From Mantamonas sphyraenae STR306 (Eukaryota > Protista > CRuMs), in the NCBI GenBank assembly GCA_026936335.1, contig JAPMXV010000041.1, forward strand, positions 62,001-126,000: a stretch of DNA of 64,000 nucleotides. The letters run 5' to 3'. Positions 50,490 through 62,315 of the stretch are shown here, one piece after another (positions within the stretch are counted from its first letter, which is position 1; every line of letters begins with the position of its first letter). The notes under the pieces were generated by a model. The model worked only from the letters and a program-made list of their open reading frames with translations. It made no database searches and was not told the origin of the DNA. The position numbers were made by a program, and so were the translations under genes.

Positions 50490-53400
50490 ATGGTGCGTGA
50501 TGGTGCAGGGTGTGTGGTTTGTGGTTTGTGTGGATGTGTGTCGCTAACATGTGCGGTGTGCGTGTGTGTGTGTGTGCAGTCGCACGGGATCCAGCAATTC
50601 AGCGAAGAGGAGCAGGAGAAGTTGCTGAAAGATTGCAGCTCGACGGTCAAGGCGCAGGGGTACTACATGAAGCGGTGTCTGGTGAGTGCGCAGCGTGGCC
50701 ATGTTGCTGCAGAGTGGATGATTCGAGGGCAGGGCACGAGAAAGAGCACAGAAGCTTACATTGAACTGTGTGCATGGACAGGACGCGCACAAGCTGATGG
50801 ATGCGCTGAAGCACGCGAGCAACATGATCGCCGAGCTGCGCACGTCGATGCTCAGCCCCAAGAACTACTACCACGTGTGTAGGTTGAGAATTGTGGCTAC
50901 GGTGGCCTTGTGGTCATGTGTTGCCCGTCTGGCATTGTGTGGTGTGCATGGACGGTGGCGCCAGAGTCCACGCAAGCCCCAGCTGGGGTCTTTTTCCCTC
51001 CCTGGGTTTGGCGCACCCTGCACGCACATGACGACGCCGTGTGGCCTCTTGATTGGGTGTAACGCAGGCGTGAGATGCATAGGCACAGGGTAGCAGGGAC
51101 ATGTGGTCGTGTGCATGCGTGTGTGTGGCGCATACGGGAACCGGAGGCGGGAGGCTGACACGGCATTTTCTACGCTGGGCCCCACTTCTGGGCGACATAC
51201 CACACAACGGCGGGGTCGTGTGCACACGAAATGGTGTGTGTGTGGAACGGCGTGTGTGTGTGTGTGCGTGTGTGTGTGTGTATGACCACAGACTGCCTTG
51301 TGTTTGACGAGCTGAACCTGCTGGAGCAGTATCTGGTGGAGGAGCAGAAGCGAGGCAAGCGCATTGCGGAGCTGTACGAGGTGGTTCAGTACGCAGGCAA
51401 CATCCTGCCGCGTCTGTACCTCCTGGTCACGGTGGGCTCCGTGTACATCCGTTCACAGGAGGCACCAGCCAAGGACATCCTGCGTGACATGGTGGAAATG
51501 TGTCGCGGCGTGCAGCATCCCACACGAGGCCTGTTTCTGCGCAACTATCTGCTCACGCTGTGCAAGGACAAGCTGCCGGACACCAACTCGGCATACATTG
51601 GCAAGGGAGGCGACGTGAACGACAGCGTGGATTTCATCCTGCTCAACTTTGTGGAGATGAACAAGCTGTGGGTGCGCTTGCAGCACCAGGGCGCCGTCAA
51701 GGACCGCCAGCGACGCGAGACGGAACGCAAGGACCTGCAGTTGCTGGTGGGCACGAACCTTCGTCGTCTGTCCGATCTGGAGGGTGTGACACCGGAGTTG
51801 TACGAGAACACGATCCTGCCGTCGATTCTGGAGGAGATCATCCGCTGCAAGGATGTCATCTCGCAGGAGTACATCATGGAAATCATTTCGCGTGTGTTTC
51901 CCGACCACTTCCACCTGCGTACCATCGACCAATTCCTGGGGGCGTGCACGCAGCTGCAGAGCGCGGTGGATCTGCGTCGCATCATCACCTCGCTGATCGA
52001 CCGCCTGGCCAATTACATCAAGACCACGGAGAACAAGTCGGCCATTCCGGACGACCTCTTTGCCACCTTTTCGTCCTACGTCAACAAGGTCATCCAGTCG
52101 CGTCCCAAGATGCCCATGAGTGACATGCTTGCCCTGCAGGGCAGTCTGCTGAGCCTTGTGTTGAGCACGAGTGAGTTTGTTTGGTGGGGAAGGGGGGAAA
52201 GGGGGGAAGGGTGAGTGTGTGATTAGGGCCCCCACTGACACAGGCAGCGCACAAAAGACCCCGATCGCATCGACTACGTGGACGGGATCCTGGAGTTTAC
52301 GACGACCATCCTGGGCAAGCTGCCAGAAAAGAGGCTGGAGAGCTCGACGTGCATCTCTCTGGTGAAGCAGATGCTGATGAGCCCGCTGGCGACGTACAAG
52401 AACATCCTGACGGTGCTGGATCTGTCGCACTACGGCAAAACGTTGGAGTATCTGGACTTTTACACGCGGCGCGACGTGGCGGTGGCGCTGTGCAACACGG
52501 CCATCCGGTACCACAAGACTCTGGAGGACCCTGAAAAGGTGCACTTCCTGTTTACGTACGTCAACGTGCTGCTGGAGGACCAGGACGACTTTTCGGATGC
52601 CATCTACGACGACGAGGACTTTGCAGAGGACTTGGTGCTGACAGCCAAACTGGTGAACCTGCTGTACTCGGAGTCGCCGGAAACGATGTACAGCTTGCTG
52701 AAGGTGGCCAAGTCGCACCTGAAGAATGGCGGGGAGCGTCGTGTGCGCAGCACCATGTTGCCGCTGCTGTTCCGCTCGCTGATGCTCACCAACCTGATTG
52801 AGGAGGCCAACGGAGAGGAAGAGGGCAGTGCCGGGGTGGCATCGCAGAAGGCATACAAGTTCATGTCGGACTGCGTGACGGCAGTGTCGGAGGTGGATGC
52901 GTTCCTGGGCATCAAGATGATGCTGCAGTGTGCGCAGAACGCGGCGTCGTTGTCGTACGAGGACATTGCGTACGACTTTATGGAGCAGGCCTTCCTTGTG
53001 TACGAGGGAGAGAACGAAATCAAGTGGCAGTACGACGCCGTGGTGCTGATGATCTCGTCGCTGCAGGCGATGAGCGGGTTCAGCACCGAGTCGTACGAGG
53101 CGTTGGCACAGAGTGCGGCCGGGTATGCCATCAAGCTGCTGCGTAAGCCGGACCAAAGCAAGGCAGTGTGTCTGGCCACACATCTGTACTGGACGGCGGA
53201 GGACAGCGACGGGGAAGGGGGCTACCACGACGCAAAGACGGTGTTGAAGCTGTTGCAAAAGTCGATGCGTGTGGCAGACAAGTGGGTGGATCCCAAGGTG
53301 CAATTCCAACTGTTTGCAGAGATCCTCAACCGCTTCCTGTACTACTTTGAGGCGGGCAACGAAGAGGTGGCAGAGTATGTGAACCAGCTGATCGAGCTGA

Positions 53401-53546
53401 TCGACACCAAGATGGAGAGCTACACAGAGGCCGCGGAGGATCTGGACGAGGTCAAGGACTTTGTGAGCAACACCATGCGGTATGTGAAGAGCAAGCAGGA
53501 GGGAGAGGAGGCTGCCAAGTGGAAGGCGATTGTGGTGGGAGCATGA
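50490..53546 (+). CDS. VPS35: Retromer subunit VPS35, 5 exons
   Basis: [83 protein letters not shown]; AATAAA at 53593-53598. Confidence 0.97.
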
Positions 53547-53619
53547 GCATGAGCATGAGAGCTGTATTTTTCGTTTGTGCGTGAACGCACTCAATAAATG
53601 CACTCAAACTCACATAAAA

Positions 53620-53770
53620 TACTTGACCATGTCCAAAAGTCGGCTTACTTCGGGACAAATGGCTCCCAGGGCATCGTTGCTGTCTGCCCTGGGCACACCG
53701 AGCGGTGGCTTGCGCTCGGTGATCTTCGCAGCTCCAGTCGTCGATGGAACTGCCCTCACATCCTGTTCAC
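53620..53770 (-). ncRNA. Candidate Fanzor omega-RNA scaffold / element end
   Basis: Four consecutive hairpins directly after the Fanzor stop: 53728-53753, 53696-53721 (perfect 9 bp), 53665-53693 (perfect 9 bp) and 53627-53662, then CAAG-TA and AT-rich host flank. Confidence 0.7.
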
Positions 53771-56700
53771 TCACCCTTCCGTACCGGTGGTGACTTGATC
53801 ATTGGACGTGGCTGTGGCTGCTGCTTCCTTCTGTCTGCTGAATGGCATGGGTCGTTGTCCCGATTTGATTTGTTCAACAATGATCCAGAAGAATGCTTCG
53901 CAGGAGTGCTGGTCTCGCTGCATCGCCACGTGCAATGGAATGTCCTCGTCGTTGTGGATTTCCCGTTGCAGCAGCGCAAACAACGTCTGCTTTCTGGTGT
54001 GGTGATTGCGCGACTGGTAGCCGCATGTTTTGCAGAACTGGAGCCTGCCCAGGGGTTTGCGCGACACATTGGTGTTGAAGCTGAGTGTCGTTCCACACCT
54101 GTGCACACTGGATGTGCCATACTCGTCCAGGTCCTTGACCACGTTGTAGTACACGGCCAGCTTGTCCAACACGTCGCCCGTCCGTCCGCCGAGGCTTGAT
54201 TGTTTCTTTCCTCCCACCACCAGCACGTGCTGTTTTGGCATCCCTCTGTTGGCCATGAGTTTCTGTGTCTCTTCGATTGACCGTTGCAGGAACTGCGCCT
54301 GGATACGCGTGCCATGCCTCCGTCGTCGCATCTCGTTGTGCGTCATCGTCGGGATCGTCATCTGGAACACCTTGTTGTTGTGTGTCCACATGAGAACCCA
54401 TGTGTCCCGTGTGACGCCCCAATCCACCAAGGCGAACAAGGTGTCGTTGACAATGGACACCCACTTCTCCTCCTTCACGGTGTCTCCGTCGTTGCCACCG
54501 GGGTCATCGACAGCACCAGCATCCACCTCGCTCTCCTGTGCCTCGCCCTCGTAGTTGCCGCCTGTATCGTCGTCTCTGCCCTGTGCACTGTCCGTCCCTG
54601 GTGCCGCACCCACTTCACCTTGTTGTGTCTCCCTCGACGCCGACCCGATCGTATGAAACTTGCTGACCCCCCGGGACCCAACGTTCCGTCCAAGGTCCCG
54701 CAGGCGCCCATACTCCGACTTGTTCACGAAGGGAGCCATCCATACGGGCAGGGTGTTGGAATACTGCAGGATGTTGGTCGCTGCTGTGAACAGTGGTCCG
54801 GAAACCTTGTTGAGTCGGTTTTTCCCAGTGTCCTTGTCGCTGCTCTTGTTGTTCTTCGCTCGCGTTTGCATCTCTGCCTTGATACGCCAGAGATGGGTCA
54901 AACACTCATGCTCAATCTTGGCCACCAGTGCGCTGTGCGTCTCGGTGTCGTTGTGGGCGAGCGGGTCTTGGACCAAGGTTTTAGGATAGAACACGATCGC
55001 GGCTGTCCCGGCCGACGATACGTGCGTCGTACCTTTCCAGTGGTGCAGCTGAGTAGGACGCATTCGCATCACGGCTGTCGTGTTGGCCGCAACGCTCGCA
55101 AACATGTCGTCGAACAGCGAGGTCGCGTCCTCGCCCAACGACGCCCACCACCTCGACACTGCACAGCGCACCTTTTCGGGGAACTTGCCTTTGTGCGTCT
55201 TCCACAGCTCCAGCACTCTCTTCCAGGTTGCTGTGCTGATCGAAAGCGCCTTGCCGTTCTCTCCCAGCGTCACAGCTGCCTTCACTGCCTGCCATTGTGT
55301 GTCGTTCTCCAGCAGGAATGGGATCAGCATCGTCTTGGCGTCCTCCGGAGCGAGCATCATCCCCACATCCGCCTCCTCCAGTGTAAGCTGCGGCAGCAGG
55401 TTGTGCAGGATGCAAAGCGGCGCGTTTGCCAACGCTTTCGCCTTGTGCCCCTTGCTCTCGGTCGCAAGCATCGTGCCGTTCGGATCGATGGCCTTCAGCA
55501 GCTCCCTCGCCTTCAACAACAGCATGCGGTAGCTCCTGGATCGTCTGATCTCACCCGCCTTGGTCACTGCCTGTGTTTGCGCGTTTGTCCGTTTCTGCGC
55601 CGCTTCAGCTGCGTGGGCATCGTAGGCAAACCCCAGGGCAGCCTTGCACACACCATGGCGTGTGAATGCCTTGTGAACGCCCCCGTTTGGGTGTTCTTCA
55701 CTTGATGCGTCGACAGCTGCAAGCAGGGCAGCCTCGCGGATACCCTGCGCTCCCGGTTCTTGTGCTTCAGCGTAATTAACCAGCAGAGTCACGTACAAAA
55801 GCGCCCTCTTGCTGGTCACCACTTGCTTGAGCCTCGACGTCACCATGTTGGCCAGGAGCCAGCGCATGCGAGTGGCCGCAGCACCCAGGTGGCTGATGTC
55901 TGGGGCAGTGCAGTCCACGCTGCATGTGTTGCCGCCGTCCTTGCTCACAATGCGTCCTGTCATCCTGTCCACGTACAGTTGTCCCTTCACCTTTGTCAGG
56001 ACATCCCACACGAGGCCATCTTTTGACGCACTGGTCATGTACTTGACGGCAGTTTCAATTTGGGTTTGGTTGCATCCCTGAAGGACACCGACAACCGCAT
56101 TGACAGCCGTCAGCACACATGGGACAATGTCGTTGTATGTGTCCGCCAGGCGCTGAAGAAGCTGGTCTTCGCTTTCGAGAGCGTGGAACCCGAGGTCACC
56201 GAGTTGGGCGACATTGTGAATTGCCCCAAGGCCAATGGGAATGGTGGTGTCTTTCACGCCTGCGTCGGTCATAGCAGTTTGGATGAACTCGGTCACGTCC
56301 TGGATCAACAGGTCCTGGTCATCTGGTGGAGGCGCGCTTCTTGAGGTGCGTTTGCGAGGGCGTCGCTGCAGTTGCGTCGTGTCGTGCTCAACGCTCTCCT
56401 TTGGCATGTCATCCAGCGAGCCTATGGCATGGGCAATGCGTTCTTCGCCTTCGTGTGCTCCTGTGTGAAACGCCGCCGCGGTTTGAGTTTCGTCGTACAG
56501 CGAATTCTCTGCCAAGCTGTTCAGGTCTGCCTCGGTGAACTCGATTACCTTTTCGAAGGTATTGATGTCGTGCAGGAGCACACGTGCAGAGCAGTGCCCA
56601 TTCAACGCATCGGCTTGTGCCCTGAGGACCCGCTGGAGTGTGACCACCTGTGAGTGCGCCACGCCCATCTCTACGCCGCTGGAATCCACATGACCCTTTG

Positions 56701-59541
56701 CTGCAAGGTTCTCAGCCATATAGTCCACCAGGTAGTCCCAGACGTGGTGTCTGAACGCCTCCATGTCCATCGCGGCTGCAGTCCCTTTGCCTGGGTTCTG
56801 AACGTGTTCGGCGCGGAGTGTGGCCAGATTATGAAAGACACTCACGGCCTTGTCGTCCTCGTCATGCATGATGGATGCCAATGCCATCTCTGGCTCCTCC
56901 AGCTTGAGGTAGAGCTCCATCTTTCCAGACAGCGTGGCTGTGGCGCTGTGAAGCGGACGGTGTGGGAGGATGAACCTGGCACCGCCGTCGACAAACAGAG
57001 CCGTCCGCACGGCCGCGCACATGCACGCCCGCCCGCTTGTGCTCTTGATGGCCTTGCCACCCGATACAATTTCGATGTTGATCTCTGCCCCGTTCAGTTC
57101 GCCACATAGAAGCAGCAACGTCCCGAGCCACTGCTTTGCCCGTGGAGACGTCGAGTGCAGCCTGAAAACGGTGTTGTCCGTGCTGTTTCTGAGCAGCTGT
57201 ACGATGGTGGCTTCGTCGGCTGGGGTGTGTTTCTTCAAGGCCTTGGCGAGCCTGAAGTAGGGCCTCATCTGCCCCGCCTTCTTGCCGTTGTAACTCCACA
57301 TCCTGCTCGACGAGATGAGCAAACGGCGCTGCATGCTCGCTGTCACGCCTGGGGCACCTTCGATGATGGCGTCATGAGTTGCGATCCCCAAACACACGCA
57401 AGCCTGTGTTGTTTTGTCCGGCCCACCGACCTTTCCGAACGCGTACGAGCCCAAATCCACCACGTCGATGTACTCCCGCTTGTCCGCTTCCTTGTCATTC
57501 TTCTCTTTGTTGGCCTTTTCTTCTTTCGCCTTCTTCTCCTTGGCCGTCACCAGCTGTTCAAGCGCCTTTTGCGACGTGGTGGGTTTGCCCGGCAGGGCAC
57601 CGCGTAACGCCGCAAATCCTTGTTCATCCTTTTCCTTGGCACCCTTCTTGAGCATGTTGTCGCCAAACGTGTAGCAGACAACGTGCACCTGGTGTGCAGC
57701 ACCGTTGTTTCCACGCACATACATCATCTTTGCGTTGGCGAGCGAGTACTCCAGCTGGCCAACCAAGTACTCTTCGCTCGCCTGCAGGCAGGCCTGTTTC
57801 TCCTTTTCGCGCTGGTTCTGTTGCTGCTCTCGCCTCTTTTCTGCAGCACGCCTTTTCTTGTTCCGCTTGCCACGGCCACCGCCACTTGCTTTGCGCCGCT
57901 TGTTGGAGTTGCTCCCCGTTTCTCTGGTGGGAACGGCGGGCATGGGCAACCTGGTGATTGACGACTCGTGTGGACGCACCGGCGCAGCAGCAGCAGCGTA
58001 TGAGCATGGCTCCGTGGTCCCGACTGTCGCGTGGACGACACCAGGCAAATTGGGTGTCCACTCGACCGAGCTAATGGCGTCGTCGTTGAACTCGAGCCAC
58101 GTTCCTGTGTGGATACGCACCATTGCAATGTAATGACCGGCGTTGGCATCTTCGGATGGGTGGTACAGCATCACAGTGTGCACTTGCGCCGCAACTTTCA
58201 CAGCCAGGTTGCTGGCAACAACTGCGCCGTTTTCGTATCTTCCGTGGTTGTACGTGTACACAGCAGTGGGCGTGGAGCGCAACTCAGTCGTACTCTTGCC
58301 CTGGATCGCGGGCTTACTCTTGCCTTGGATCGGGGTCTGTGGGCACTCGCTGCAGTTCCATTCAAACGTCCCGCCTTGGGTAATTGGATGAACCGGATGA
58401 TCAAGGAAGAATGCCTCTGTTTTGCGCGACGAGAGCTCGTGCTTGCACTCCGGGCAAACGGCATCCGACCTCACAACGACGACGCCACAAGGCAGCGCCC
58501 CGAGGTCGTCCAGGGGGGTGTCTTCGCGTACCGCTTCGAGTACCCCATCCACGAATTGTGTGTGCCCTTGGATGAACTCTCCGAGTGTTAAGAGTCTGGG
58601 AAGGGACAGTGTGTGTTGGCTATGGTCAGCGACGGAACGGCGTTGTTGGAACGACGATCGCCAAAACTTACGCCTCTGTGGACGCCTGTTGCTTGCGCAT
58701 CTTTTCTCCGCGCTCGGTGGAGAACCACGCATGGAGCAGAATTGCGGCCTTGGAGGCCGCGTCCTCGTCGTTGCGTCCGTTCCCCATCATGTGTGACCAC
58801 AGACACAAGAGAGAGCGGAGTTGCCAAGTGCGCTGAATTGTCTGAGTGCTCCAGTCGCAGATGCCTCTGCCGAGTGCAATTAGGAGGACACGTACGGCCA
58901 CAGTCATGTAGCACAGTACCGCGCGCACGTTGCTGTGTTGGTGGTAGGGGAGGGGAGGGTGTGTGTTGGTGATTTGGGGAGGGGAAAAGAGTGCACCTTG
59001 CACGCTGCACGCCAGAGGATGACACCACGGGAAATGCTTACCGGATACCGCGACGTGCATTCAACATGTGTTCCACCACGGGGTTGGCCCCAGCAGAGTA
59101 CTCTCCCTCGTCGTCAGCACCCAACGTCTCGAAGAGAAACCCGACAACACTCTGGTCGATTTGGGGCGCAAACTCCTCACACAGACCGTTCACGGCGGAA
59201 TGGATGGTCTGCGGTGCATCTTGTTCCTGTGCAGGCGTGCCCCCAGTGTCTACTACAACAGGTGTCAGCGCTTGGCGCGCAGCCGAAAAACGAAAACACA
59301 GGCAGGATAACGCACAGCTGCGCTCCAAAAACGCAAAACACGCTGATGGGGTGCTAGATTGCCAATCAAACTCATCACTGGTCGGCTCCTGATGGTGATG
59401 GTGACTCCCGACATCGGGAGGTGTCGGTGCGAAAGTCGATTCGTTCTCCGCGGCGCCAGCTGCCGCCAGCATCCGTTCTGCCACCCTTCTTGACCGGCGA
59501 GGCCCAGTTGGGGCAGTGTTGCCCGGCGTCTCGTCACTCAT
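53771..59541 (-). CDS. USP (peptidase C19)-Fanzor1 fusion protein, ~1861 aa; exons 59541-59042, 58932-58672, 58595-53771
   Basis: USP Cys box GIRNVRAVLCYM, QQASTEALL, two CxxC, His box GHYIAMVR..W.EFNDD. RuvC-I LVDWG, RuvC-II VLVVG...DEYGTSSVHRC, CKTC, RuvC-III QRD, C-terminal GQRPMPFSR. Both GTAAG..CAG introns are phase 2 and keep the frame (5586 nt total). Confidence 0.8.
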
Positions 59542-60237
59542 GGTGTTGCGTGCCGGGTGGATACGTTGTCGACGCCCGCGCCAAAATCCGAATCCTGAAT
59601 CCAACCCATTCTCATATCCACCTTCATGCTGCATTTCCGACACGTACATACACTACAGGACACGGAGATTAGATACCGGAGTTGTATGACATAGCTGGTG
59701 GTGTCAGATGCACCCGCCTGGGGAGCCGCCAATTCGATGTGCGCTTGCGCTCGTCCAGTCGATTCATGGGTCGTGAATCCATACCACGCGCACGCCAAAC
59801 ATACGCGGAGTATCTACATACCCGCTCTGGTCATCGGTAATCATCCAGCCAGTGTGGAACGAGATTGGCCAAGGCTGCACGCCGTGCCAATTTCAGCGCA
59901 CTGGTCCGGCGCCCTCAACCCTTGTCAGCGACCTGTGCTTCAGTCAGTGAATGCACGCTCACGGCCCGTAGCAGCAGATCAGATCAGCTGCCGTGTTTAC
60001 CCGGATGCAGTTGTTTTGGTTTCCCGGACGTCGCACGGGAAGACAACAGCAGCAAGCGAGGCGGATGATGTGCAAACCCCGTGATAGTGTGGATCTTTAT
60101 CGGTGTGCACGAGGCCCCTACGGTGCCGTGTCTCACTCAAACAGACGTCATCGACGGGAACACAAGCCGTAAATGCTGTGCAATTTCATCGCAGGTGTGC
60201 CAAGCCGTCCCGTCGTTCTTTTGCCACCTGGAGAGTT

Positions 60238-61168
60238 CCATGTCGGTTGTGGGATGCCCGGGATGGTGTACAAGGAGCGTGGGACACCGTGCCGGTGGTT
60301 GCGTTGGAGATCGGCAGCGAATGACCCCGGCGCTGGACAACCTTCCCATTGCGTCCCTTTCGTAATTCAAAGTGTGCTCCATGTCGGTTGTGGGATGCCC
60401 AGGATAGTATACAGGGAGTGTGGGACGCCGGGTTGATGCTGGCGTTGGAGATCGGTGTGGTGAATGATTCGTGTGCAGAACAGCCCTGCCATTCCGTTCG
60501 AACCGAGGTTGGTAGAGTGTTCCATGTCGGTTGTGGGATGCCCGGGATGGTATACAGGGAGTGTGGGACACCGGGTTGATGCTGGCGTTGGAGATCGGTG
60601 TGGTGAATGATTCGTGTGCAGAACAGCCCTGCCATTCCGTTCGATCCGAGGTTGGTAGAGTGTTCCATGTCGGTTGTGGGATGCCCAGGATAGTATACAG
60701 GGAGTGTGGGACGCCGGGTTGATGCTGGCGTTGGAGATCGGTGTGGTGAATGATTCGTGTGCAGAACAGCCCTGCCATTCCGTTCGAACCGAGGTTGGTA
60801 GAGTGTTCCATGTCGGTTGTGGGATGCCCGGGATGGTATACAGGGAGTGTGGGACACCGGGTTGATGCTGGCGTTGGAGATCGGTGTGGTGAATGATTCG
60901 TGTGCAGAACAGCCCTGCCATTCCGTTCGATCCGAGGTTGGTAGAGTGTTCCATGTCGGTTGTGGGATGCCCAGGATAGTATACAGGGAGTGTGGGACGC
61001 CGGGTTGATGCTGGCGTTGGAGATCGGTGTGGTGAATGATTCGTGTGCAGAACAGCCCTGCCATTCCGTTCGATCCGAGGTTGGTAGAGTGTTCCATGTC
61101 GGTTGTGGGATGCCCGGGATGGTATACAGGGAGTGTGGGACACCGGGTTGATGCTGGCGTTGGAGATC
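60238..61168. repeat. 143-bp tandem repeat, ~6.5 units, with A/B alternation (286-bp higher-order repeat)
   Basis: The unit start CCATGTCGGTTGTGGGATGCCC occurs at 60238 (diverged), 60379, 60522, 60665, 60808, 60951 and 61094. Confidence 0.97.
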
Positions 61169-61299
61169 GTGCAGGGTTTTCACATATTGTGCTTGGTTCA
61201 CTCCCCACATGAGCCGCTTTCCAAACGCAGAGCATGGTGGTCTATGGCAGCCTTGTGCAGATGTCCACGCGATGATGATGCCGCCATGGCCTTTCTTGG

Positions 61300-61884
61300 A
61301 GAGGTGTCGACGCCCGGTTTTACGACGACCTCCACACTCGCAGGTCGACTCCAGTCTCGTCGGCCCACACTATATTCTTTGCGCGCATTCGTGCATCTGT
61401 GCGCTGCAGCCGTTCAAACTCGCGCCGCCGCATACGCACGTGCGGCTTCTCTTTCAGCTGAGAGATTCTTCAACTTTTTCAGTCGCAACTGATGCCGTTG
61501 GCAGAATATACACAGTGTAGCCAGGGAAACTCGAAGATGGAATTGTCTCGTCAAAGCCAGCCGCATCTCATCAAGATACGAGGCACTGTGCTTCGCTATA
61601 CGGCGGACAAGGGATCGTTTGTGGTGCGCCTGCAATTTTCTGGCCGCCCACCGGCACGAAGTGGAGTTGCCACACCTCCTGTGACACGAAACTGGGCAAC
61701 GTACTTGTGCACAGCACCTACGCTGACCTTCCAGTGCAAGGCTACCTGCTTCATTGATTGCGGGGTTTGCGTTCAGGTAGCCGTTTACTATGTTGAGACG
61801 CATCGCTTCCGGGATGGCTGAACCAGACTTGTACACCCCACCGTGTGTGTTGATCTTGAACGTTGGGTTCATTGCACTGGGCAT
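61300..61884 (-). pseudogene. Frameshifted, truncated IS630/Tc1-mariner transposase with a paired-like HTH
   Basis: INTHGGVYKSGSAIPEAMRLNIV..., VSVGAVHKYVAQFRVTG (shifted frame), YLDEMRLAL..VSLATLC...LRLKKL, and first catalytic motif VWADETGVD (61345-61370). No second D or E motif found. Confidence 0.75.
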
Positions 61885-62315
61885 GTTGGTTTGGTGACAA
61901 TTGCTGATCCGTCAGGTTGGCGTCTGGTGCGCCTTGTCCATCACACCTGCTTGACATCCCTTCTCGTCCACACAATGCATTATTCGCAAGGATTCATTGT
62001 TTCCATTGTATAGATGACTTTGGTAAGCTTCTTTCAGTGCACGTGGAAACCGAGGGGGAGTGGGAACGATTGGCCGATAGAGCACAGCCATGAGCACACG
62101 CCAAACCGGGGTGTGAACATCTCTGTGATCACAAAGAACCCACAGAGGAGTGATATCATGCCTCGGTGAACATTCTATGTGTTTCTGGGCGTTGTTCTCG
62201 GTGGTGGAGCCATGTTCACGCTCAATTGCAACCAACTGAGCGCGAGTGTCGTGGCAAACAAAAAAATCGCAATCGAAGGGGCACCATTGAGCAGATCGAC
62301 TTGTGGGCAGCGGTG

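Follow-up and report, generated by a model that had tools for sequence, protein, structure and literature searches.

The locus and its features

The sequence analysed here was taken from the deep-branching protist Mantamonas sphyraenae STR306 (assembly GCA_026936335.1, contig JAPMXV010000041.1, positions 62,001-126,000 of the forward strand). This whole stretch of 64,000 nt is referred to as the window, and coordinates are window positions unless another contig is named. The M. sphyraenae genome has been published as diploid (PMC10492846), and paralogous copies were sought in all 78 of its contigs (25,061,354 bp). Next to the host gene VPS35 the window carries an element of about 8.7 kb (62238-53562), which was inserted 15 bp past the VPS35 stop codon, lies in the orientation opposite to VPS35 and is bounded by imperfect 25-bp inverted repeats. 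Its features, other than the hairpins treated below, are as follows.

52278-53546, plus strand: last exon of VPS35, the host gene (PF03635, E 1.9e-85)
53545-53559, minus strand: predicted guide of ~15 nt (53561-53547 if the duplication is counted); boundary from copies, length and placement by analogy (PMC10432273, PMC10711439)
53560-53561, minus strand: 3' copy of the target-site duplication, CT (a 3-bp CTC fits the window copy equally)
53562-53586, minus strand: right terminal inverted repeat, 25 bp, imperfect, with the element end at 53562 (from copy alignment)
53593-53598, plus strand: AATAAA inside the transposon end, in subfamily A1 only
53771-58732, minus strand: giant Fanzor1-like ORF, 1,653 aa from the first ATG (open frame of 1,671 codons)
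60231-61169, no strand assigned: 143-bp tandem array, 6.6 copies, between transposase and Fanzor
61323-61884, minus strand: broken, truncated IS630/Tc1-type transposase
62214-62238, minus strand: left terminal inverted repeat, 25 bp, starting CAGTTGG, not overwritten in the window copy
62239-62240, minus strand: 5' copy of the target-site duplication, CT

A preliminary description of the locus had assigned the element to the IS630/Tc1 type, and this was supported by the inverted repeats and by sister copies. Four of these (on C11, C43, C46 and C59) encode an intact 355-codon DD34E transposase that matches Pfam DDE_3 (E 2e-24) as well as HTH_32/PAX. The genome contains another set of IS630/Tc1 transposases that look intact and are 44-48% identical (C57, C2, C44, C11, C14, C58, C68, C29, C40 and C17), several of which lie ~7-8 kb upstream of other giant Fanzors. 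In the C46 copy, a repeat of short period (~66 bp, judged from BLAST offsets) is greatly expanded within the Fanzor ORF, at about 5100-8460 of L036.

A giant Fanzor1-like protein

The ORF upstream of the hairpins had been called a Fanzor, and its catalytic triad, profile matches and predicted fold bear this out as Fanzor1-like. The window protein contains a RuvC triad of D1437 (in DWG), E1537 (in DEYGTS) and D1607 (in RD), a zinc finger and a C-terminal GxRP. The three acidic residues and the zinc-finger cysteines are invariant among 11 paralogous C-termini, six of which match Pfam Cas12f1-like_TNB, and an alignment of 66 sequences gave the consensus DPG..ExxTSxxCxxC..CxxC..RDxxAxxN..GxRP. The spacing of Bao and Jurka, D-X(125,275)-[TS][TS], is 102 aa in the window protein, and its zinc finger starts with His (H-x-C..C-x2-C), the other paralogues being C4; judged by its residues, the window protein carries a variant of the Fanzor1 motif. 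The coding sequence is under purifying selection.

Pfam and PDB searches with the single unspliced 1,653-aa protein gave no match, and no WED or REC domain was found by Pfam in the N-terminal ~1,400 aa of the unspliced ORF. A word-indexed search with the full-length protein returned no long homologues and was uninformative on shorter kin. A profile built solely from this genome recruited 372 proteins; against PDB it yielded just two matches, both of them Fanzors and both weak (E 0.29 and 0.42). The extended profile matched PpFz1 (E 5e-26), SpuFz1 (E 8e-25) and GtFz1 (E 1e-15), with scores largely carried by the recruited homologues. The last 259 aa were modelled at a pLDDT of 78.9; with this model the best four Foldseek matches were all SpuFz1 (E 3e-4 to 8e-4, TM 0.41-0.45), and VIA-align placed Cas12, TnpB and Fanzor proteins nearest (Z 7.8-10.4). 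The modelled C-terminus thus appears to be a Fanzor1-like RuvC-TNB fold with the triad intact.

The best homologue outside this genome was a Mantamonas plastica transcript; the transcriptome of that species contains an expressed Fanzor-like relative of 927-1,048 aa as assembled (P0001/P0151). Near the Fanzor N-terminus (58060-58150, minus strand), the string GHY...W.EFNDD resembles by eye the His box of ubiquitin-specific proteases, with no Pfam match for the unspliced ORF.

Element boundaries and target site

Seven copies of the right end were recovered from the genome: those of the window and of C2, which form subfamily A1, and five of subfamily A2. Identity to the window was 98% for the C2 copy and 78-79% for the A2 copies. 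All seven, the six others being on six other contigs, are alike as far as 53562 (...AATACAG) and diverge right after it. The element had previously been thought to end at a TA at 53621, with the AT-rich stretch past stem 4 belonging to the VPS35 flank. That boundary is refuted, since similarity among paralogues runs on to 53562 and the empty allele (see below) lacks the 53621-53562 stretch; the AT-rich sequence lies within the transposon. Paralogous copies whose similarity runs past ~53621 had been named beforehand as a refuting outcome, and this outcome was observed; other copies do share the scaffold, with compensatory changes.

Target sites were compared in 15 elements, namely the seven with the window-type right end and eight with the same left end but another Fanzor and right end. 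The target consensus was TG-NN-CA, and the duplicated dinucleotides were CT, CA, CG, GT, TT, AC and GG. The TA duplication typical of IS630/Tc1/mariner elements, which the preliminary description had expected, was absent across all 15; in the window, CT is duplicated in a TG-NN-CA-type target whose 5' flank is CG instead of the usual TG. A fixed duplication of 3, 7 or 9 bp was ruled out, because match lengths span 1 to 10 nt. In geometric terms, a 2-bp duplication with a 25-bp repeat fits these junctions best.

One copy on C51 (522457-523302) is an internally deleted 850-bp element that retains both ends and the entire hairpin region and has no intact genes. By analogy with the ghost elements of SpuFz1, it may be a 'ghost'-like carrier of the candidate omega-RNA. 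The window and C2 copies are 72% identical in DNA overall and 64% in protein, yet 94-98% identical over the RuvC end and the hairpins (53561-54450); this pattern suggests a recent exchange of the 3' part, nuclease plus RNA, between the two.

Hairpins downstream of the Fanzor stop codon

Four hairpins had been described on the minus strand directly after the Fanzor stop. All of their arms were found at the positions given, from 18 to 144 nt past the stop codon, and a fifth hairpin follows them.

53728-53753, minus strand: stem-loop 1, 9 bp, arms 53753-53745/53736-53728; one U-G pair is C-G in A2
53696-53721, minus strand: stem-loop 2, 9 bp, arms 53721-53713/53704-53696; compensatory C-G to U-A between subfamilies
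53665-53693, minus strand: stem-loop 3, 9 bp, arms 53693-53685/53673-53665; basal pair C-G in the window, A-U in A2, A.G mismatch in C2
53627-53662, minus strand: stem-loop 4, bulged, ~14 bp, arms 53662-53653/53634-53627; U-A to U-G, pairing kept
53564-53622, minus strand: terminal hairpin (stem 5), enclosing the right inverted repeat and closing 2 nt short of the element end

Folding of this region was beyond chance: the four stems scored z -4.75, the interval 53770-53622 z -4.03 and the interval 53773-53562 z -5.5. Across 128 background windows the mean z was -0.14, and 1.6% of them scored -3 or lower; as controls, the left end of the element gave +0.98 and the adjoining coding sequence -0.84. 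The strand opposite to 53773-53562 folded at -2.8, and in subfamily A2 the antisense strand scored -4.5 against -4.3 for the Fanzor strand. The GUAUUU/AAAUAC helix that closes stem 5 had pair probabilities of 0.83-0.90 in the window and 0.96-0.99 in A2, and was weak in C2. An Rfam search of the region returned no meaningful match, and a scan for bacterial promoters and terminators there was uninformative.

The paired columns were strongly conserved. Between A1 and A2, 8 of 78 paired columns differ (10%), as compared with 34 of 74 four-fold sites upstream (46%; p 7e-7); 12 of 68 unpaired columns differ (p 3e-4 versus the four-fold sites). The four stems are the best-conserved part of the region; the tail contains indels and is the most divergent between subfamilies. 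Within the four stems, two pairs have changed at both positions between A1 and A2, and two at a single position. Five base pairs differ by substitution, two of them via double change, and pairing holds at five of five in A2 and four of five in the window copy; ~18% of random single changes would be expected to leave a pair intact. The compensatory changes predicted among copies were thus found in part: there are two double-sided changes, but they come from two lineages only and 30 of 500 shuffles reached the covariation score, so that the structure-keeping changes are suggestive and not significant.

An empty allele at the VPS35 locus

In two DNA sequencing runs, a contig leaves the window at 53562 and resumes in the sequence past 62240. 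This contig represents the empty allele, where the duplicated dinucleotide occurs once, accompanied by a linked 2-bp indel. Read depth over the element was about half that of the flank (26 versus 44 in one DNA run, 32 versus 60 in the other). The half depth and the empty-allele contig together establish that the window insertion is heterozygous. The empty allele, at which the predicted guide would be aimed, exists in intact form.

The RNAs of characterised Fanzor1 systems extend over the right inverted repeat and the 3' duplication and stop ~15 nt inside the flank (PMC10432273, PMC10711439, PMC13565253). Placed by this analogy, the guide would fall on host flank, covering the VPS35 stop and the beginning of its 3' UTR. 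The earlier position of the guide, 53621-53600, was wrong, as it is inside the element and is taken up by stem 5; the prediction has moved to ~53559-53545, and the scaffold becomes ~60 nt longer. The proposal that the VPS35 3' flank would supply a guide matching the empty allele is supported, given the presence of that allele in both DNA runs. The predicted 15-nt guide has no other exact match genome-wide and 11 matches with one mismatch; it lies in a short CTCATG hexamer repeat (53542-53561).

The position of an AATAAA at 53593-53598 on the plus strand was borne out, but its reading as the polyadenylation signal of VPS35 was ruled out, because it is internal to the transposon and missing from subfamily A2. 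Its possible use by VPS35 would be confined to the filled allele. Antisense regulation of VPS35 is disfavoured as well: Fanzors target double-stranded DNA, and the overlap of guide and VPS35 is explained by the insertion site and implies no regulation at the RNA level.

Transcription of the hairpin region

Run X3 was recognised as RNA by its GT..AG joints. It derives from a poly(A)-selected library and was available as assembled contigs, in which neither strand nor RNA ends are visible. The window's Fanzor ORF is covered at a depth of 12-17 as against ~3 in an intron, and all hairpins are covered, with C2-type letters. One X3 contig links VPS35 to C2-type sequence, probably as an artefact of assembly across the terminal stretch that the copies share.

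Other Fanzor families in the genome

In the eight further elements that share the left end, both the giant Fanzor (1,780-1,860 codons) and the right end differ from those of the window element; the inverted repeat of that right end is likewise paired in a closing stem (z -3.35, with one compensatory change). Giant Fanzor-like ORFs of at least eight divergent families were seen in the genome, with open frames of ~1,600-2,060 codons. In most of them the region after the stop folds strongly (z -2.6 to -5.2), in two weakly, and the 3' ends are sharp and family-specific. When the 3' ends of the genome's different Fanzor families were compared, no sequence similarity was found except between two related ones.

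Asymmetric junctions and possible homing

Right junctions were exact in 15 of 15 elements. At the left, the outer 1-8 nt of the inverted repeat were replaced, in register, by bases of the copy's own right flank (L035, which is the C2 copy, L037, L039, L042, L047 and L049-L052), and apparent duplications reach 10 nt at constant register. When the outer seven left-repeat bases, at 62238-62232 in the window, were compared with CAGTTGG, 14 of 19 deviating letters were identical to the right-flank letter in the corresponding position (mean under permutation 4.8; p 1.2e-4; letters within a copy are not independent); the other five are unexplained and may have been inherited from donor copies. The C2 copy has a 7-nt overlap, a non-consensus 5' flank (TC) and approximately full depth (37 versus 44 and 66 versus 60), which could also reflect two heterozygous copies. 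The heterozygous window copy, in contrast to C2, has an unaltered left end, a comparison of two loci only.

One tentative reading, which we regard as possible though rather doubtful, is that the asymmetry of these junctions is a trace of homing guided by a Fanzor in a living eukaryote. The ribonucleoprotein would cut the empty allele within the guide match, and the left broken end would retain right-flank bases as a 3' tail; this tail, partly trimmed, would be extended in register on the filled allele, overwriting the outer 1-8 nt of the left repeat and leaving the right junction exact. For SpuFz1 and GtFz1, cleavage of the non-target strand falls after base 14-17, and chew-back by polymerase delta has been described in yeast (PMC9477423). 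The window copy, with its clean left end, heterozygosity and non-consensus 5' flank, would then be a site not yet converted. An alternative would be that left-end overwriting results from an unusual transposase reaction.

A candidate omega-RNA and its rivals

Fanzor omega-RNAs at the right ends of transposons are a known kind, and a scaffold alone is unsurprising. In SpuFz1 and GtFz1, the omega-RNA is located between the Fanzor stop and the element end (PMC10432273), and a terminal hairpin that includes the inverted repeat has been reported for Fanzor1 RNAs (PMC10711439). We consider it likely that the hairpins described here are the scaffold of a Fanzor1 omega-RNA (fRNA/reRNA) borne by a cut-and-paste transposon of the IS630/Tc1 type. 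By analogy, the candidate scaffold would be at most ~212 nt long (53773-53562, or 53773-53560 including the duplication). A minus-strand RNA would run from about the Fanzor stop through the four stem-loops, the fifth hairpin and the 2-bp duplication into ~15 nt of host flank, and these final ~15 nt would be the guide. The ribonucleoprotein would bind DNA in which a 5' motif (a putative TAM, probably the transposase preference ...TG-NN) stands directly before the guide match. Motif and match would adjoin only on the element-free allele, which would be cut; with the filled chromosome as the repair template, the element would be restored or spread. The continued presence, at about half depth, of a perfectly matching empty allele argues against efficient cutting at the window locus; the CG flank, which departs from the consensus, is a possible explanation for the survival of this allele.

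Solved Fanzor1 RNAs measure 75-150 nt (PMC11423790), and against these a scaffold of up to 212 nt is long, so that part of the stems may be a feature of the mRNA 3' UTR alone. Carried further, this becomes a distinct proposal: the four stems would be 3' UTR structure of the Fanzor mRNA (for stability, processing or termination), and only 53622-53562 plus flank would form a short, SpuFz1-sized omega-RNA. The poly(A) RNA contig does continue from the coding sequence through all four stems, the RNAs of SpuFz1 and PpFz1 are just 75-90 nt with two stems, and the terminal hairpin folds alone (z -2.4). We nevertheless judge this unlikely, as conservation is best in the four stems and not in the tail, the GtFz1 RNA packs four stem-loops into 150 nt, and an omega-RNA and an ORF can overlap on one transcript. 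Less probable still is that the repeats act as DNA, as subterminal transposase sites or cruciforms, with no functional RNA and the Fanzor as a passenger. The stems adjoin the right inverted repeat, no RNA ends are seen in the contigs, A2 folds equally on both strands and the empty target is uncut, all of which would suit such DNA elements. Yet G-U wobble is accepted on the Fanzor strand, comparable structure is absent from the left end, and the right-end structure follows the Fanzor and not the transposase, being unrelated between two families that have their left end in common; moreover, the intact RuvC triad and purifying selection do not suit a passenger.

The original version of the omega-RNA, which ended at the TA at 53621, took its guide (53621-53600) from VPS35 flank and was antisense to VPS35, can hardly be right. 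The sequence does turn AT-rich past stem 4, and the subfamilies differ most there. Against this version, however, six other contigs share the stretch through 53562 (98% identity in the C2 copy), it is missing from the empty allele, and the inverted repeat occupies 53586-53562.

Comparison with known systems

The candidate scaffold resembles in layout the SpuFz1 omega-RNA of Spizellomyces punctatus Spu-1 (PMC10432273, PDB 8gkh), which likewise occupies the non-coding region from the Fanzor stop to the 3' inverted repeat, has a conserved scaffold followed by variable flank, is kept in Fanzor-less 'ghost' copies and goes with a RuvC-TNB fold. It differs in that the scaffold here is up to 212 nt with five predicted stems, as compared with 75 nt and two; the protein is ~1,650 aa, as compared with ~600; and the target is GC-rich and variable (TG-NN-CA) instead of CA-TA. 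No sequence similarity was found. With the GtFz1 RNA of Guillardia theta (PMC11423790, PDB 9cer) it shares a multi-stem design (four stem-loops in 150 nt in GtFz1), and the proteins are linked by the profile match (E 1e-15); the RNA here is longer and apparently needs no overlap with the ORF, and the third Asp is canonical where GtFz1 has Asn.

The Tc1/mariner elements PGv-1 and PUl-1 (Bao and Jurka 2013, PMC3627910) similarly combine a DDE_3/IS630-Tc1 transposase with a Fanzor1 between inverted repeats, and have common 5' ends with swapped 3' Fanzor cargo. They make TA duplications, unlike the variable dinucleotide in TG-NN-CA seen here, where left ends are often overwritten. The Fanzor-Helitron2 elements CRe-1,2,3 of Chlamydomonas (PMC3627910, PMC10288648) also have exact 3' ends and duplications of variable length from a fixed target motif. 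Their variable duplications occur in Fanzor-carrying and rarely in Fanzor-free copies, and a role of the Fanzor has been suggested, not shown (PMC3627910, PMC10288648). The CRe elements are of the HUH type, are truncated at the 5' end and have duplications of 7-19 bp, in contrast to the DDE element of constant length studied here, with the outer 1-8 nt replaced in register. The proposed targeting is also akin to restorative homing by TnpB/IscB in IS200/IS605 and IS607, where a right-flank guide targets the element-free site (PMC13565253); homing has been shown only for prokaryotic TnpB/IscB, and for Fanzor1 the demonstrated activity is sequence-specific cutting (reviewed in PMC13565253).

A literature search found no report of Mantamonas Fanzors. 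The present analysis provides exact, testable coordinates of scaffold, guide and target for a very large, divergent Fanzor1 in CRuMs, carried by an IS630/Tc1-type element that does not use TA, with a natural target allele on the homologous chromosome of a culturable diploid. The junction pattern in the 15 elements may render the role of Fanzors in their own hosts, namely homing, directly testable. If that reading is true, Fanzors of ~1,650-1,900 aa, ~2.5 times the size of the characterised ones, would be active gene-drive-like nucleases.
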